A stretch of 32,182 bases of DNA from Octopus bimaculoides. Lineage: Eukaryota. The position numbers and the translations under genes are program-made. The stretch covers positions 20,356,033 through 20,388,214 of the forward strand of contig NC_069002.1 in NCBI RefSeq assembly GCF_001194135.2, given 5' to 3'. Below the pieces are notes generated by a model that did not search any database, was not told the origin of the DNA, and saw only the letters and a program-made list of their open reading frames with translations. Below are positions 1-31,078 of this stretch, one piece after another. The first letter of the stretch is position 1; the number at the start of each line of letters is the position of its first letter.

Positions 1-218
1 CACAAAATATGCATTTTGAGAAGCGTGTGGGTATTTGAATCTAGATTTGAATCTAGATTCATTCTAGTAATCGCGAAATCGGCCGATACACAGTTAAGTT
101 TATTTAAAAGAAAGTTGGTCATCTTCTGTTGGTCGTTTTTTCCTCGCATTAGGTACTAAATGTGGTTATTTTGAGAAGTCCACTGTGTGGCGTTATTATT
201 TTCTGTAATAATGCCCTT

Positions 219-2091: not shown

Positions 2092-2989
2092 ACACAAACA
2101 AACAAACGATTTAAAAGCAGAAAAATATCCTCCTAAATCAAAGAACGTTTAAGACAAAAAACAAATTCTCAAATAGCGGCAGAGTACAAATCGTTGTGAA
2201 GAATGTCAATACTTGTTTGTATGAAATAAAGAATTGTTTTTCTGTCTAAAATGATGTTAAATAAAGCGTTGGCATCAAGGGTATACGGTTTGCGGGTGGA
2301 AGGTGTCATTATAGACAACAAATCAGAATTTTAAACACAATAATAGGTATTCTGGGCAGAAGGAACAATACAAGAAAATACGTACACTCTAAAATATTAT
2401 ACTAAAATTTAAAGAGTGGAAACAGCAGAGGGCTTCCTCAATTTATCTACGATGCAAAGACTCAGTTATAAGATTGAAGGCTCGGAATAAATACCTATCT
2501 TCACTATTATACATTTAACATTCAATGATTTGCTGATAGTTCACAAAAAATTGATTATTCTAAATTGCTGAGACAGATATTTCTCCGAAACGTTAATGAG
2601 GAAGCGATGCCGTATAAGAAAGTTGCCTTAGAGGTAAACTTATAGTTGAGAGGGAATATACCAATTGCATAGAGGTGATGTGTGAGGAACATGATGTTTG
2701 ACTGAAGGTTATAGGCGGAAGCATCATCGAAACTAACAGACAGATGTGAGAGTTTCCAGAAAAAAAATGCCTTTCTATCTGATTTGATATTTTTCTCGTT
2801 ACAAAACTTTTGGAGAAAGAGAGAGCTAGAAAGAGTGATTAAGAAAGACGAAAAGATATTTTCGACAGGATTTCAAATCAGAACGTACAGTAGCGTAACT
2901 AAATACTGCAAGGCAATTTATCTAACGCTCTAAGGATTCTGCTGGTCTACCGCTTAAGAGTTTCGGCCTAACGATAACAAGTCAGTAAA

Positions 2990-3412
2990 TCGCTGTGAAT
3001 AACTGGTACTTATTTTATCGACCCCGAAACGATGAAAGTAAAAATCGATGACCACGGAATTTAAACTCGGAAAGTAAAGGCGGACGAAATGCAGTTGACC
3101 ATTTTTTCCGGTCTGATAACGAGTCTGCCAGCTCAGCGTCTAATTTGCGCAAGGCAGGTAATTTCGGGGAGGGGAAATTATATCGAGTCCACTGTCAAAT
3201 TGGTTTTAATTTTATGGACGCTGTAAACATGAAAGGCAAATGTTGATCACGGCTGAATTTTGGACTTAGAAAGAGAAAAAAAACGGACAAAATACCCATA
3301 AGCATTTTACCCAGCGTGCTAACGATTTTGCTAGCTCACCGACTTATTCTTGCAATTAATATTGAGGTCGACTTTGCCGTATATGCTTTCGGGGACAATA
3401 AATTATTTTCCA
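2990..3412 (-). mobile_element. Cluster of decayed tRNA-derived SINE copies (family A): two tandem minus-strand copies (~2990-3140, ~3145-3340) plus a plus-strand fragment (3364-3412)
   Basis: The repeated block 'ttttatcgaccccgaaa.gatgaaag..aaa.tcga' and the head 'taacga.t.tgc.agctc' recur here and at 10445-10960. The reverse complement gives an A-box-like TAGCAAAATCG and decayed B-box. Confidence 0.65.
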
Positions 3413-6447: not shown

Positions 6448-7380
6448 NNNNNNNNNNNNNNNNNNNNNNNNNNNNNNNNNNNNNNNNNNNNNNNNNNNNN
6501 NNNNNNNNNNNNNNNNNNNNNNNNNNNNNNNNNNNNNNNNNNNNNNNNNNNNNNNNNNNNNNNNNNNNNNNNNNNNNNNNNNNNNNNNNNNNNNNNNNNN
6601 NNNNNNNNNNNNNNNNNNNNNNNNNNNNNNNNNNNNNNNNNNNNNNNNNNNNNNNNNNNNNNNNNNNNNNNNNNNNNNNNNNNNNNNNNNNNNNNNNNNN
6701 NNNNNNNNNNNNNNNNNNNNNNNNNNNNNNNNNNNNNNNNNNNNNNNNNNNNNNNNNNNNNNNNNNNNNNNNNNNNNNNNNNNNNNNNNNNNNNNNNNNN
6801 NNNNNNNNNNNNNNNNNNNNNNNNNNNNNNNNNNNNNNNNNNNNNNNNNNNNNNNNNNNNNNNNNNNNNNNNNNNNNNNNNNNNNNNNNNNNNNNNNNNN
6901 NNNNNNNNNNNNNNNNNNNNNNNNNNNNNNNNNNNNNNNNNNNNNNNNNNNNNNNNNNNNNNNNNNNNNNNNNNNNNNNNNNNNNNNNNNNNNNNNNNNN
7001 NNNNNNNNNNNNNNNNNNNNNNNNNNNNNNNNNNNNNNNNNNNNNNNNNNNNNNNNNNNNNNNNNNNNNNNNNNNNNNNNNNNNNNNNNNNNNNNNNNNN
7101 NNNNNNNNNNNNNNNNNNNNNNNNNNNNNNNNNNNNNNNNNNNNNNNNNNNNNNNNNNNNNNNNNNNNNNNNNNNNNNNNNNNNNNNNNNNNNNNNNNNN
7201 NNNNNNNNNNNNNNNNNNNNNNNNNNNNNNNNNNNNNNNNNNNNNNNNNNNNNNNNNNNNNNNNNNNNNNNNNNNNNNNNNNNNNNNNNNNNNNNNNNNN
7301 NNNNNNNNNNNNNNNNNNNNNNNNNNNNNNNNNNNNNNNNNNNNNNNNNNNNNNNNNNNNNNNNNNNNNNNNNNNNNNNN
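6448..7380. other. Assembly gap (N run)
   Basis: N bases. Confidence 1.
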
Positions 7381-7408
7381 CTCGTATACATTACGTTATA
7401 TATATATA

Positions 7409-7975
7409 TTTGAAGAAAAGCAACAAAAATTCAATAGGTTATAGCAGTACGTACGTTTCGTACAAACTTCATTTATTCATGTAGTGAGAACACTACATAA
7501 AATGTGCAATGAAAATGTACTCCTCAGCTGCATAATGGAATTTCATTTTAGAAAGACATTTTGTAGATGTGTGGAAAAAACAAGAGTAAGAGAAGAAGAA
7601 TACCATCTTGACTGGGCTGCTCTTCAACAGTCTAGTGAATCAAACAAGAATTTAATTTCTATATAATCTAATTGGAGGGGTAGTAGTACTTTCAATTTAG
7701 AGGAGGTAGATTAAGTAGTGATGGACAGCAGGTTAGGGGTAAATCAAGCATGAGGAAACAAAATAAAGAAATGAAAATGGAAGGACAATACCCTAAGGAG
7801 TGGTTAGAGAAAATTTAAGGTAAGGGAATTTAGGTCAAGGTATTAAAGAATTATATCTATTCTTCAATATATTTAGAATAATACAATGAAACACTAAATT
7901 AAAATTAGAACAAGACAAACATTTATAGTTAAAATAAGATAAACATTAATGTGGGGTAGTAGAAGAAAGATATTA
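7409..7975 (-). mobile_element. Inverted partial copy of PLE 3' UTR / pseudo-LTR
   Basis: 7409-7710 is the reverse complement of ~7975-8280; 7613-7975 is the reverse complement of 9205-9598. Confidence 0.9.
7439..7535 (-). ncRNA. Minimal type I hammerhead ribozyme (copy 1)
   Basis: The reverse complement reads UUAUGCAG-CUGAGGA-GUACA...UGUAC-GAAA-C-GUAC-G-UA-CUGCUAUAA, with all core nucleotides present. Predicted cleavage between 7448 and 7447. Confidence 0.85.
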
Positions 7976-9598
7976 ATCTACCTTTCTCTAAATTGAAATT
8001 ACTACTACCCATCCAATTAGATAATATAGAAATTAAATTCTTGTTTGATTCATTAGACTGTTGAATAGCAGCCCATCAAGATGGTATTTTTTCTTCTCTT
8101 AGTCTTGTTTTTTGCACACATCTACAAAATGTCTTTCTAAAATGAAATTCCATTATGCAGCTGAGGAGTACATTTTCATTACACATTTTATGTAGTGTTA
8201 TCACTACATGAACAAATGAAGTTTGTACGAAACGTACGTACTGCTATAACCTATTGAATTTTTTGTTGATTTTCTTCAAATTTTATTCACCAAATCTCTT
8301 GATTTTGTTTTTGGTTTCTACCCTACCAAATTCTGGTGCCTCAAACATTTTAAGTACCACATTTAATCCTTTGATTAAATCTATATTATTATTCGGAACT
8401 TTATATATACTCCCATTTGGGAGTATATATATTTTTCTAGTACTTAATTTTCAACAAGATGGAAAAGGTTAACATGGAATTCTCTCAGAAGGACATCCCC
8501 TTACACAGCAAAGAAATGTATATGTGGCTATTTATTCACAGAACCAATGATTTTTCAGAAGAATACGATGGATTGCCTACCACTATGATAACAATATGAA
8601 AATGAAAACCAATGAATCACAAGAAGAAAACCATTTTAAGAAACTATTTAGAAGTAGAAGAAATCCACCTCCAAATCCGTTATAAGAAAACTTTGAAAAG
8701 GACTTACTCAACTTTATTGCTAATATCAAGTTTAAGAAGCACCCACTAAGAAAAAACCCGCACCTAAGGAAACTGAAGGAATTTATCAAATCTATACAAA
8801 GCAAACCAGGTATTCTGGTCCCGGCGGATAAAACCGGAAATTTATATAGAATGGATTATACTACCTACAAAAAACTAATTATGTAGGAACTTAACAGCAA
8901 ATATAAAATAACTTCAAGAAAAATATTATCAGACATCAATTTAAAAATCAAAAAAACTATGATAGAATATGATCTAACTGATAGAACTGAACCACTTGCA
9001 ACCTGTGAACCTGAAATTAATTTAAAGGACCATAAGAAAAACTTTCAGGAAGACCCTACTGTTAGACTCATTTGCCCAACTAAATCTGATATTGGAAGAC
9101 TAAGTAAGCTTATTCTCGATAACATTATACCTTTCATTATTCCTAACCTTACTCTAAAATTATGGATTAATACAGATGAAGAACTTAATTGGTTTAATTC
9201 TAAATAATATCTTTCTTCTACTACCCCGCATTAATGTATATCTTATTTTAACTATAAATATTTTGTCTTGTTCTAGTTTTAATTATTAATGTTCCCTATG
9301 GTTTTAAATTTAGTACTTTAGAGTTTCGTTGTATTATTCTAAATATACTGAAGAATAGATATAATTCTTTAATACCTTGACCTAAATTCCTTTATTTAAA
9401 TTTTCTCTAACCACTCCTTAGGGTATTGTCCTTCCATTTTCATTTCTTTTTTTTTCCTCATGCTTGATTTACCCCTAACCTGCTGTCCATCACTACTTTT
9501 CTACCTTCCTCTAAATTGAAATTACTACTACCCCTGCATTTAGATTATATAGAAATTAAATTCTTGTTTGATTCACTAGACCGTTGAATAGCAGCCCA
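7976..9598 (+). mobile_element. Internally deleted Penelope-like element: pLTR (7976-~8280), decayed ORF start (8474-9204), 3' UTR plus partial pLTR (9205-9598)
   Basis: Translation MEFSQKDIPLHSKEMY../FRRIRWIAY..ILVPADKTGNLYRMDY..INLKDHKKNFQEDPTVRLICPTKSDIGRLSKLILDNI..LWINTDEELNWF matches the N-terminal/early RT motifs of Neptune-type PLEs (ADKT, LKDHK, RLINP.KS). The direct repeat 7977-8075 recurs at 9500-9598. Confidence 0.9.
8153..8249 (+). ncRNA. Minimal type I hammerhead ribozyme (copy 2)
   Basis: Stem I 8153-8160 / 8241-8249 (one bulge); CUGAGGA 8161-8167; stem II base GUACA 8168-8172 / UGUAC 8224-8228; GAAA 8229-8232; 1-bp stem III C8233-G8238 with palindromic GUAC loop; GUA triplet 8238-8240, predicted cleavage after 8240. 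Confidence 0.85.
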
Positions 9599-9600
9599 GA

Positions 9601-9663
9601 CTTTTACTTGTTTCAGCTATTTGTCTGCGGACATGCTGGAGCACCACCTTTAGTCGAGCAAAT
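9601..9663 (-). mobile_element. 3'-end fragment of SINE family B
   Basis: Reverse complement of the 13381-13444 block (cttttacttgtttcag..tgctggagcac..ctttagtcgagcaaat). Confidence 0.8.
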
Positions 9664-10444
9664 ATATATAAGTATATATATTATTAAATACTTATATATA
9701 CTTAAATACTTGTGTAAATTCAAATATATACATGTATATGTACATACAAGTCCCAACATACATTCGTGCATGCATACGTAAATACGTATATACATAATGT
9801 TTGTTTTTTTTTCTCTTTAAACAGCCGTAAGAAATTTGCTTACTCCACAGCGAATGTGTTAATCAGAGGTGCGAAAGATTTACTGAACTTTCCCTGTTAA
9901 CACAGCAATTTCTCTTGCTGTTTGTTAGTTAAATAGTGGAAACGTGATATTTCATTGGATCTTATCAGCAACATATCTTTAACGATCATTCAAATAACAT
10001 TACTGAATATCAAAGGTGACGAAAGATTATAAGAGTGGACATGTTCTTCAAAATATTTTAATAGATTTAAGAGATTTCCTAACAAATCTACAACAGAGAT
10101 CTACATATTTCTCTTTGCATAAAAGTCGCAAAACTTTTGTGAATAGTATGGGAATCACAAATCAAACTTTTATGGGAGAACTATTTTTCTGAGTTTCTAA
10201 ACGATCAGTTATTTTGTGATTTGGATAGATTTATTACAGGGACCAGACAATACAAATATATACAAATAATTCGTTTAAATGTTTGCACACGGATAAAAAT
10301 CTAGACGGAGAGAAAATGTGGATCAAGTTTACACCAGAATTTGCCTAAAATTTTAACGTACCACATTGGGAGACAAAAGGCATGTTTGATTGCGATGGCA
10401 TTTGGAATGAGATCGCTTAGAGCAAGAAAAATATTTATTTCAAA

Positions 10445-14375: not shown

Positions 14376-15119
14376 TGCCAGAATTCGGTTGAGGACTCTG
14401 CCCCGCAGAAAAATTCAATATGGACGCCTACTACATCGATTATTCTATGAAAAACATACCTATACCATCAAAGGAAGTATATTCTAAGAAACCTTTGGAT
14501 AAAATACAGACCTTATTAAGCGCATGAGACGGAAAGCATTCTTTACAACATGGAAGAAGACACTACAGAGAACATATTCTATGATATTAATTCTAAGAAA
14601 TTTCCTCCAAAAATCAAAGGCTTGGAAGACTTCGAAGCTCATGAACAAAATAAAATTTCGTAAGTCTTTTAACCCGTTCCAACAGAAACTGAAAAAAAAA
14701 ATATCAAATACATAAGGAGTACCAAAAAAAAAAAAAAAAAAACGGCACATTTTTTTCCGATAAAACCAAGAACTTATACCGAGTAGAAAACAGCACATAT
14801 TTACAACTTCTACAAAATAGCATCATCAATAAATACACCAAGGCTAAACCACAAACTTATAACAAAATTAATAAAGAAGCTAGCATTATCACCACCAGAC
14901 TTATATTAGATATAAAAAAAAGTAGAGGTCCTCCCCCAAAAAGAGGCCTTTATTACTATCAAAGACCATAAAAAGAGCTTCCTGGTTAATCCTAAATGTA
15001 GGCTTATTAACCCAGCTAAATCAGAAGTTGACATTATTTGTAAAGACATTTTAGGAAAAATCAATGCGAAAGTCAGGAATGCCACTAGGTTAGTACAATG
15101 GTCCAATAGTATAAAGGTC

Positions 15120-15577
15120 GGCGATCTTACGATACCAGTGCCAAGGATCGGCCTTTTCCGTAAAAAGGTTTGGAGGGAAAGACGGAAACGACGTCGTAAA
15201 AGCGAAAGAGATAGAGAGAGCGCGATTTCTTTTGAAGTTGGCGCTGGTGTGTGTATGTGAGAGAAAGAAAGAAAGAAAGAAAGAAAGAAAGTAAGAAAAA
15301 AAGAAAGAAAGAATGAAAGAAAGAAAGAAAGAAAGTGAGAGACAGATAGATACATAACCGAAATTATTTTTATTTCGGTAATTGTTCAGATTAACACCCG
15401 CACGATCTTCACTAGGGTGTTAGGGTTAGGGTTAGGGTTAGGGTTAGTGTGAGAAAGAGAGATTATGTATGTATGTATGTATGTATGTATGTATGTATGT
15501 ACACGTTTTACGGAAAAGGCCAATGTGATGTAAATGAACACACGTGGGTGCTTTGGTACTGGTATCGTAAGATCGCC
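15120..15577. mobile_element. Non-autonomous DNA transposon (MITE) with 25-bp GG-terminated TIRs and a decayed 8-bp TSD; Merlin-like by TIR/TSD rule
   Basis: TIR 15120-15144 ggcgatcttacgataccagtgccaa vs reverse complement of 15553-15577 ggcgatcttacgataccagtaccaa (24/25). Flanks taaaggtc / gagaagtc (5/8). Removing the element plus 8 bp restores the host frame S-I-K-V-I-D-W-F-K. Confidence 0.8.
15412..15447 (+). repeat. Interstitial telomere-type (TTAGGG)4 with flanking variant/partial units
   Basis: ctaggg tg then ttaggg x4 (15420-15443) then ttag. Confidence 0.95.
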
Positions 15578-16407
15578 GAGAAGTCATCGACTGGTTTAAA
15601 GCTACTCAGAATAAGAATAAAGCGAGATTCACGCAGTTCTATATTGTCGACGTTTATGCCTCTATCTCTAAGGAACTGCTAGATATAGCTCTCGACTTCG
15701 CAAGCGAATTCATAGAAATCAGTACACAGGATAAAGACTTTATTCTTCAACGAGAACGCAGAGTGAATCAAGACTACCGATACAGAGGGTGCTTTTGATG
15801 TGAGCATGGAGTCATATGATGGAGCAGGCATATGCGATCTTATTGGACTATTCCTACTAGATATGTTGGGAAAAAGCTTTTTCCTGGCGTATACTTCGCC
15901 ATTTACAAAGATGATGCCCTAGATTTAACCGCAAATACGAATGGAGCAGCACAGGATCGGTTTAGGAACGACATTATCCAATTGTGAAAACTCGGTCTTA
16001 GCATAGCTACAAACATCAACCTGACGGTTGTCAATTTCCTAGACGTATCCTTAGATCTAAATAAGAATATTTATAAACCTTATAGGAAGCCCAACGATAG
16101 ACTTAGTTATATTAATGTGGGTTCCTGCCATCCCCCCATAGTGCTTGAAAATTTAGTTAAAACATTAGCAAAATAATGTTTAGCCTCTCCTCCATAGTGA
16201 CATTTTTAATAGCGTTGCCCCAGTATATAATAAGACTCTAAAAGAGAGTGAATTTAGCTAGTAAATAATCTATACACCTGCCACCAGTTCAATAATAAGG
16301 ATAAGAAAACACAGGAATAGGAAAACTTTCTAGTTCACACCCCCTCACTCACCCGAAGTGACCTTTAATATAGACAAGTATTTCTTAGCACTGGTATATA
16401 GACATAG

Positions 16408-19794: not shown

Positions 19795-19898
19795 NNNNNN
19801 NNNNNNNNNNNNNNNNNNNNNNNNNNNNNNNNNNNNNNNNNNNNNNNNNNNNNNNNNNNNNNNNNNNNNNNNNNNNNNNNNNNNNNNNNNNNNNNNNN
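19795..19898. other. Assembly gap (N run)
   Basis: N bases. Confidence 1.
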
Positions 19899-30574: not shown

Positions 30575-31078
30575 NNNNNNNNNNNNNNNNNNNNNNNNNN
30601 NNNNNNNNNNNNNNNNNNNNNNNNNNNNNNNNNNNNNNNNNNNNNNNNNNNNNNNNNNNNNNNNNNNNNNNNNNNNNNNNNNNNNNNNNNNNNNNNNNNN
30701 NNNNNNNNNNNNNNNNNNNNNNNNNNNNNNNNNNNNNNNNNNNNNNNNNNNNNNNNNNNNNNNNNNNNNNNNNNNNNNNNNNNNNNNNNNNNNNNNNNNN
30801 NNNNNNNNNNNNNNNNNNNNNNNNNNNNNNNNNNNNNNNNNNNNNNNNNNNNNNNNNNNNNNNNNNNNNNNNNNNNNNNNNNNNNNNNNNNNNNNNNNNN
30901 NNNNNNNNNNNNNNNNNNNNNNNNNNNNNNNNNNNNNNNNNNNNNNNNNNNNNNNNNNNNNNNNNNNNNNNNNNNNNNNNNNNNNNNNNNNNNNNNNNNN
31001 NNNNNNNNNNNNNNNNNNNNNNNNNNNNNNNNNNNNNNNNNNNNNNNNNNNNNNNNNNNNNNNNNNNNNNNNNNNNNN
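30575..31078. other. Assembly gap (N run)
   Basis: N bases. Confidence 1.

Follow-up and report, generated by a model that had tools for sequence, protein, structure and literature searches.

The window analysed here is a 32,182-nucleotide (nt) stretch of the Octopus bimaculoides genome (RefSeq assembly GCF_001194135.2, contig NC_069002.1, positions 20,356,033 to 20,388,214 of the forward strand), and it carries two hammerhead ribozyme (HHR) motifs beside the remains of a Penelope-like element (PLE). We judge, with a probability of roughly 85%, that these motifs are sequence-intact minimal type I hammerheads situated in two head-to-head copies of the pseudo-long terminal repeat (pLTR) of a Hydra-clade PLE, and that they persist at this locus as relics. 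An earlier note on this DNA had reported paired, opposite-strand hammerheads with a complete core and a palindromic helix III, an account that proved accurate in every particular when set against the sequence, the motif scans and the identity of the two copies. It had also suggested that the locus might still yield self-cleaving RNA as a retrozyme-like, non-autonomous unit; the locus is instead most likely a silent relic, for reasons that emerge from the family to which the two copies belong, from their predicted folding and from the RNA data.

Two complete minimal hammerheads on opposite strands

The forward-strand copy (copy B; Table 1) reads across 8150–8252 as UUAUGCAG CUGAGGA GUAC...GUAC GAAA C GUAC G U A / CUGCUAUAA, where the slash marks the predicted cleavage site. 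Helix I is formed by GCAG (8157–8160) and CUGC (8241–8244), and gains four further pairs, out to 8153/8249, when U8245 is bulged. The CUGAGGA of 8161–8167 supplies positions C3–A9 and the GAAA of 8229–8232 supplies G12–A15.1, while helix II occupies the 61 nt in between (8168–8228), beginning with the closing pair G10.1–C11.1 (G8168–C8228) and comprising 5, 7 and 11 bp with internal loops in the constrained fold. G8168 follows directly on A8167, without the unpaired nucleotide that usually separates A9 from 10.1. Helix III consists of A8232–U8239 and C8233–G8238 with a GUAC cap, and 8232–8239 is therefore the 8-nt palindrome ACGUACGU; H17 is A8240, in a GUA cleavage triplet. The conserved type I core is complete in copy B (C3–A9, G12–A14, A15.1–U16.1 and an H17 other than G) and the same nucleotides are found in copy A, where CUGAGGA is the complement of 7521–7527. 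The three-helix type I topology is also present: helix I is open-ended, and the other two helices are closed.

The two copies are identical at 100 of 103 positions (reverse complement of 7436–7538 compared with 8150–8252), or 94/97 across the span used in the earlier note. The only mismatches are the equivalents of 8181, 8200 and 8213, all in distal helix II; at these three positions copy A has the family consensus and copy B has private changes. Independent motif scans found exactly two hammerhead sites in the window. A descriptor specifying the core, helices I and II of 4 bp or more, the 15.2–16.2 pair and UH has a chance rate of 0.0025 matches per window (400 dinucleotide-preserving shuffles), and the two matches observed are copies of one repeat rather than independent events.

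Table 1. Features of the locus, and hammerheads in related elements. Positions are those of the window unless another sequence is named.
Feature	Position	Strand	Basis and details
Hammerhead copy B, type I	8157–8244	+	Motif scans and constrained fold; predicted cleavage A8240/C8241
Hammerhead copy A (twin)	7444–7531	-	Motif scans and constrained fold; predicted cleavage after the complement of 7448
Head-to-head inverted repeat	arms 7425–7702 and 7986–8263	both	Repeat search and folding; 283-nt spacer
pLTR copy A	7398–7975	-	5' boundary 7975 (equivalent to 9205), hammerhead, short tail; no open reading frame
pLTR copy B, 5'-truncated	7977–8458	+	Starts at the equivalent of 9500; hammerhead, long tail to ~8389, leader to ATG
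Dead N-terminal PLE open reading frame remnant	8459–9204	+	tblastn with P0010
pLTR copy C	9205–9599	+	5' part of the pLTR; direct to B, inverted to A 7612–7975; ribozyme part lost
Hammerhead of the contig encoding P0014 (L004)	2340–2385 of L004	+	58 nt after the stop codon
PLE-type minimal hammerhead, O. vulgaris locus around P0001 (L001)	17651–17720 of L001	+	39-nt helix II, palindrome ACGAUCGU (GAUC loop)
PLE-type minimal hammerhead, O. vulgaris locus around P0001 (L001)	3407–3455 of L001	-	Loop-less (ACGU); typical unpaired A after A9

The motifs lie in pseudo-LTRs of a Penelope-like element

The remnant of a PLE open reading frame (ORF) has its ATG 218 nt downstream of the copy B hammerhead, which shares its strand. 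This ORF is dead, as the earlier note had maintained: it starts at 8459 (MEKVNMEFSQKDIP...), shifts frame near 8551, meets stop codons at 8683 and 8884 and breaks off at 9204. Local tblastn aligns it to residues 1–246 of the 759-residue relative P0010 (41% identity, E=3e-44). The intact protein is ~720–800 residues long, and the part missing from the remnant includes the reverse transcriptase (RT) core and the GIY-YIG endonuclease (EN). It retains ADKTGN (DKT for DKG) and, near its N-terminus, RIRW, the third RW(K) residue being I rather than K. An exhaustive protein search with 8887–9204 as query retrieved 1145 relatives at E≤1e-3, and in a word-indexed protein search the closest named relative, and the single octopus match, was an Octopus vulgaris hypothetical protein. 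The long relatives P0008, P0010 and P0014 share an N-terminal RW (RWR or RWP), DKT, YRDDG, a CxCX5C linker (CNCxxxxxC) and a GIY-YIG-like C-terminus of the form (I/V)Y...Y(I/V)G(S). Contigs of relatives measure 2.4–2.6 kb.

Pfam at 1e-3 returned nothing for the ORF remnant and ten long relatives, and at E≤10 five long relatives yielded one weak GIY-YIG match (P0008, E=0.012). With Pfam near-empty, the PLE identity rests on motifs and on the published description of the Hydra clade, in which DKG is replaced by DKT, an RWK motif and a CxCX5C linker accompany a divergent RT, and elements are below 3 kb, insert at (TA)n, universally carry HHRs and occupy hosts including Mollusca (Craig et al., 2021; PMC8557442). 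On these motifs the host element would be a PLE of that clade. Consistent with Hydra-type (TA)n insertion, the tail of copy A adjoins (AT)n at 7398–7409 and family copies end in TA/TG repeats.

The earlier note had spoken of an inverted PLE pLTR pair. This stands for copies A and B, which are head-to-head, and is incomplete for the locus as a whole, which holds three pLTR pieces, with copy C in direct orientation and stripped of its ribozyme part. The short tail of copy A ends ...CTTCAAAT (7408) before (AT)n, and the family has many short-tail copies that end with TTCAAAT followed by an AT repeat (loose ends at 8263). In copy B, a TA-rich perfect palindrome at 8400–8432 (tatatatactccca/tgggagtatatata) separates the end of the long tail (8389) from the start of the ORF; it has a weak mir-1277-like Rfam match (E=0.9) that is probably due to chance. 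Copy C does not reach the hammerhead segment: after 9599 it gives way to an unrelated fragment resembling a short interspersed nuclear element (SINE). In other genomic copies the ORF runs on past 9202 (...WFNSIDNNNNFSFI...), hence only this locus has the 9204/9205 junction. A minority allele at 8132/7556 common to A and B suggests that these two copies arose in one complex insertion event; 'complex tandem/inverted insertions' are a known habit of PLEs (PMC8557442). The target-site flank of copy A is unreadable because an assembly gap (6448–7380) lies 18 nt beyond its tail; further runs of N occupy 19795–19898 and 30575–31078.

Hammerheads also occur in related elements (Table 1). The one following the P0014 gene reads UUCCG CUGAAGA UCCCUUCGGGGU GAAA C CAUG G U A / CGGAA and contains the palindrome ACCAUGGU; its helix I is UUCCG/CGGAA, its helix II has a UUCG tetraloop, and positions 10.1 and 11.1 would form a U–U mismatch. 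Together with the GAUC loop from O. vulgaris, this gives three unrelated loops (GUAC, GAUC, CAUG) that are all self-complementary, as the dimer model of PLE hammerheads requires. The O. vulgaris locus around P0001 contains no copy of the window's own hammerhead family, only an ORF homologue and SINE fragments, and the P0010 contig has no hammerhead core, its sequence ending ...CTGCAG where the core would begin. Pattern matches in a further O. vulgaris sequence (L006) were rejected as hammerheads, helix I and the 15.2–16.2 pair being missing; at 2428–3053 this sequence has two inverted copies of a short repeat flanking a long (TA)n/(CA)n, which are the source of the loose core matches.

A dispersed family with a constrained ribozyme core

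Relative to the single-copy flank, contig depth reaches ~7000x over 8140–8389 and its mirror, 100–400x in the upstream pLTR and 10–25x in the ORF. The depth in raw genomic reads is 950–1100 (~1.9 billion bases sampled per run), corresponding to at least 1300 copies on the assumption of a ~2.7 Gb genome (~0.7x sampling). The ribozyme segment thus belongs to a family of ~1300–7000 copies in which polymorphism is concentrated in distal helix II and the flanks, and the same family, with the same polymorphic sites, is present in three other organisms. Family depth climbs gradually from ~8085 to 8150 and falls sharply at 8389 into (TA)n/(TG)n, with a subset of the family ending at 8281. This profile is that of putative 5'-truncated, target-primed insertions with two tail classes and agrees with the internal-initiation 'tail' model put forward by Frangieh et al. 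(2024; PMC11167929). Recurrent head-to-tail joints were absent from family DNA reads and TRF detected no tandem array in the window; the family therefore consists of dispersed copies and is no tandem retrozyme.

The distribution of polymorphism within the family indicates constraint on the ribozyme. None of the 59 nt in 8153–8180 and 8223–8253 (i.e. helix I, core, base of helix II, helix III and cleavage site) is polymorphic in 5% or more of genomic reads, compared with 28 of the 203 nt elsewhere (P ~5e-4, hypergeometric, calculated by hand from the polymorphism lists), and 10 of these 28 sites fall in distal helix II. Variation in the core amounts to CpG decay only, at 2–4%. The source copies therefore kept the ribozyme intact during amplification. 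Among the distal helix II variants, 8194G, 8219G and 8210A are wobble-compatible.

Folding and predicted sequestration in a hairpin

In neither copy is the hammerhead the minimum free energy (MFE) fold of the monomer. The hammerhead-compatible fold has a predicted energy of -22.8 kcal/mol in copy B (MFE -25.3) and -24.4 kcal/mol in copy A (MFE -28.3), placing it 2.5–3.9 kcal/mol above a minimum that either exploits the recurring GUAC blocks or has the core paired to sequence from helix II. Such behaviour would be expected of minimal hammerheads that need a partner. The computed self-duplex of ACGUACGU has an energy of -9.8 kcal/mol, or -12.5 with its flanks. RNAcofold applied to two full copies did not return the double hammerhead, and we report only the palindrome duplex energy because the double hammerhead has a crossing (kissing) topology that lies outside RNAcofold's representation. 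The same program gave a competing dimer through the palindrome CAGCUG, which lies in helix I and the core.

The arrangement of the two copies imposes a further obstacle. With the ribozymes on opposite strands, a single transcript lacks two same-sense copies, so no same-sense dimer can form in cis. The arms of the inverted repeat are 278 nt long and 94–97% complementary, and a read-through RNA of either strand would form one long hairpin. For a transcript of 7400–8290 the prediction is a hairpin of -480 kcal/mol in which 267 of the 278 arm positions are paired arm-to-arm and every core nucleotide of copy B is paired with its antisense twin.

RNA evidence

The RNA data comprise two 2026 runs, with ~6% of each sampled. 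The family is abundant, at a depth of 300–800. No read carries the private alleles of copy B (8132, 8269, 8318 and 8369), and depth is zero in the unique flank at 8400–8470. Across the family as a whole, neither starts nor ends of reads pile up at 8240/8241 (detection limit ~20% of depth), and no unit-length RNA ends were seen in the short-read data; the only flagged read-end site, 8263, marks an indel that distinguishes subfamilies. The dominant RNA source is another head-to-head pair of the family, identified by reads that join 8072 to 8206 on opposite strands (~100 per direction).

Family RNA over 8222–8270 contains ~19 A>G / T>C sites at 7–50%, as against one C>T. These changes include 8239 T>C (~45%), 8240 A>G at A17 (~35%) and 8232 A>G at A15.1 (~15%), and the A>G / T>C sites are all below 2% in genomic reads. 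Their cluster falls where the head-to-head copy that dominates expression is paired. ADAR hyper-editing is plausible in a coleoid cephalopod. As the DNA and RNA derive from different samples, we infer, rather than observe, that the cluster reflects ADAR hyper-editing of the paired part of the hairpin. Inosine, being G-like, should inactivate the ribozyme at A15.1 and A17.

Proposed mechanism and alternative explanations

Taken with the literature, these data suggest the following scheme. In a competent element, a tandem pLTR-ORF-pLTR transcript would carry two same-strand hammerheads, whose ACGUACGU palindromes could pair to create an 8-bp intermolecular helix III, probably aided by the element's own protein; each ribozyme would then cleave after GUA and the retrotransposon RNA would be trimmed. 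The ribozyme-bearing 3' part of the pLTR has been copied thousands of times while its source copies stayed under core constraint, most copies probably being 5'-truncated products of target-primed reverse transcription in (TA)n sites. At the present locus the ORF is dead, transcription is not detectable in the sampled runs and the ribozymes lie on opposite strands, and a read-through hairpin would lock both of them, leaving relics. Similar head-to-head pairs elsewhere in the genome are transcribed, and their RNA bears A>G / T>C changes of the type that ADAR makes in double-stranded RNA, including at A15.1 and A17.

Several observations weigh against this reading. Rfam covariance models (Hammerhead_1, which the earlier note had proposed as a check, and related models) gave no hammerhead match at the gathering score or at E≤10, a miss probably due to the length of helix II (61 nt) and the shortness of helix III (2 bp); the Rfam matches that were obtained (low-complexity miRNA-like hits and one weak snoRNA) are regarded as chance. 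The helix II variants 8187C, 8188C and 8190C disrupt pairs and are not compensatory, and the polymorphism data are per-position frequencies rather than linked haplotypes and hence provide no measure of covariation. On the side of the host element, Pfam RVT_1 was not detected in the relatives, and the clade was assigned from motifs and from relatives at 41–46% identity, not from a phylogeny. The silence of the locus is judged from ~6% of each of two RNA runs, the read ends provide no positive sign of cleavage in the family, and the editing call is drawn from unmatched samples.

The failure of Rfam and the non-minimal monomer fold could also be taken to mean that an AT-rich repeat merely resembles a hammerhead by chance. 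This is effectively refuted by the expectation of 0.0025 per window, the location of the motif where it is expected relative to a PLE ORF, the avoidance of functional segments by family polymorphisms and the recurrence of the same architecture in the pLTR of a related element (that of P0014). The active unit envisaged by the earlier note, transcribed, cleaving in trans-dimers and yielding processed or circular RNA, we regard as very improbable. It would account for the intact core in both copies and for the abundance of the family in RNA-seq; the predicted stability of the 8-bp ACGUACGU duplex would suffice for pairing in trans, and a 2026 preprint ties animal retrozymes to PLE pLTRs (Li et al., 2026). 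Against it stand the lack of RNA reads with the alleles of the locus and the zero depth of its unique flank, the want of a tandem repeat in the window or head-to-tail joints in DNA, and an opposite-strand layout that leaves no unit between two same-sense sites. Moreover, the hammerhead fold of about -23 kcal/mol, itself above the monomer minimum, would be out-competed by the hairpin of about -480 kcal/mol, read ends do not accumulate at 8240/8241 even family-wide, and minimal PLE hammerheads are very weakly active in vitro (PMC4209133).

It is unlikely, though less so, that the motif is conserved for a role other than cleavage, e.g. as a structured element recognised or bound by the PLE protein or used to initiate reverse transcription. 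Constraint on the core in the source copies without a cleavage signature in RNA-seq would sit well with such a role. So would the behaviour of the Anolis Poseidon hammerhead, whose cleavage is protein-dependent, whose catalytic mutants leave insertion in vitro unaffected and which shows no RNA-seq ends at its site (PMC11167929), and the fact that Naiad PLEs proliferate without HHRs (PMC8557442). However, catalytic nucleotides and a palindromic helix III have been kept across unrelated PLE families with different loops (GUAC here, GAUC and CAUG in the relatives), as a dimeric ribozyme needs; fungal PLE hammerheads cleave well as monomers (PMC4209133), and C3G/G8C in the Anolis element behaves as expected of a true ribozyme (PMC11167929). 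Alternatively, the relevant feature might be the inverted repeat itself, as a hairpin source of double-stranded RNA, an ADAR substrate or a small-RNA precursor. The predicted hairpin with its long, highly complementary arms agrees with this, as does the other head-to-head pair that dominates family RNA and has A>G / T>C changes clustered in its paired part. Yet the locus is without transcription in the sampled runs and PLE insertion routinely generates head-to-head pairs as a by-product, such that no selected function is needed to explain the repeat, and we consider this account improbable for the locus.

Sequence-intact hammerheads in relic pLTR copies thus remain our preferred reading. A wider proposal, which we put forward as speculative and would not expect to hold in full, is that the pLTR tail with its ribozyme may act as a SINE-like unit of 10^3–10^4 copies mobilised by a few Hydra-clade PLEs across several octopus species, that its frequent head-to-head pairs may be substantial ADAR substrates, and that editing at A15.1 and A17 may chemically disarm the hammerhead. 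If true, this would be a case of host RNA editing acting on the active site of a catalytic RNA.

Other features of the window

Two further PLE remnants are present on the forward strand. The first, at 14559–16405, is Hydra-like and more decayed, with several stops and frameshifts; it covers the N-terminal region and the RT core at 26–27% identity to residues 54–558 of P0010, and motif scans of the window found no hammerhead near it. The second, at 546–716, reads CNCLNKTSC...YIYIGG (CxCX5C linker and GIY-YIG-like motif), contains stops and is 36% identical to residues 617–674 of P0010. A hammerhead candidate at 16–88 (forward strand, UUGAGAA ... GAAA UCGGCCGAUA), which combines a U3–A8-type core with a 10-nt palindrome at the position of helix III, was rejected because helix I cannot form.

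The SINE-like fragment that truncates pLTR copy C (9600–9663, extending to ~9732) belongs to a very high-copy repeat, which reaches ~68,000 times the single-copy depth in DNA contigs and is also very common among RNA contigs; four copies at 84–92% identity are found in the O. vulgaris locus around P0001. Beyond it, a TA/TG-rich imperfect palindrome at 9715–9800 produces sub-threshold mir-297 and mir-1277 matches on both strands, the best of which scores 36 bits relative to a gathering score of 90, and is a low-complexity artefact.

Comparison with known systems

The literature that the earlier note invoked says what was claimed of it. Minimal hammerheads in PLE pLTRs, their dimer model, their thousands of solitary copies and their very low activity in vitro were described by Cervera and de la Peña (2014; PMC4209133), who also reported 'dual min-HHRs ... 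~100-700 bp ... in opposite strands'. As pLTR hammerheads, the dimer logic and opposite-strand pairs have been known since 2014, the octopus locus adds little in principle. It contributes an octopus Hydra-clade family whose helix II is unusually long and which escapes the current Rfam models altogether, and population-of-copies data pointing to constraint on the ribozyme core during family amplification. Predicted hairpin sequestration would also offer a concrete reason for head-to-head copies to be catalytically inert. The sole potentially fresh point is the occurrence of A-to-I-type changes at catalytic positions of transcribed pairs. No report of an octopus or cephalopod hammerhead was found in the literature searched.

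The closest resemblance is to these PLE hammerheads (PMC4209133). Shared features are the type I topology with a full core, the G10.1–C11.1 pair, a 4-bp helix I before a bulge, an enlarged helix II, and a helix III of the 15.1–16.1 and 15.2–16.2 pairs whose self-complementary loop allows an 8-bp dimeric helix III. The location in a pLTR on the ORF strand, the thousands of mostly solitary copies and the opposite-strand pairs 100–700 bp apart are likewise in common. The octopus copies differ in a helix II of 61 nt (~23 bp with internal loops) where 7–8 bp are described, and in lacking the usual unpaired nucleotide between A9 and 10.1. They have a loop 3 (GUAC), like the Drosophila, rotifer and shrimp variants, and are not of the loop-less form. 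The host element resembles the Hydra clade (PMC8557442) in ADKTGN, the RW motif, (TA)n insertion, short elements, the HHR, and the CxCX5C linker and GIY-YIG-like end of its relatives; unlike full elements of that clade, the copy in the window retains residues 1–246 only, its own RT and EN having been deleted.

With metazoan non-LTR retrozymes (Cervera and de la Peña, 2020, PMC7229834; Li et al., 2026) the octopus family shares a type I HHR, a short, AT-rich, non-coding, high-copy unit, RNA in transcriptomes and, probably, mobilisation by PLE machinery. Those retrozymes consist of head-to-tail repeats of ~150–450 bp, each with an HHR, whereas the octopus copies are dispersed and microsatellite-ended with no tandem array, and their hammerhead is of the minimal PLE type with no recognisable loop–loop tertiary contacts. 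The hammerheads of newt satellite 2 and avocado sunblotch viroid, dimer-dependent according to Forster et al. (1988) as cited in PMC4209133, are in that account similar to the octopus ones in having an unstable helix III with a palindromic loop, such that two ribozymes must pair. Theirs, as described there, are same-sense copies within tandem multimeric transcripts, whereas the octopus copies are mutually antisense.

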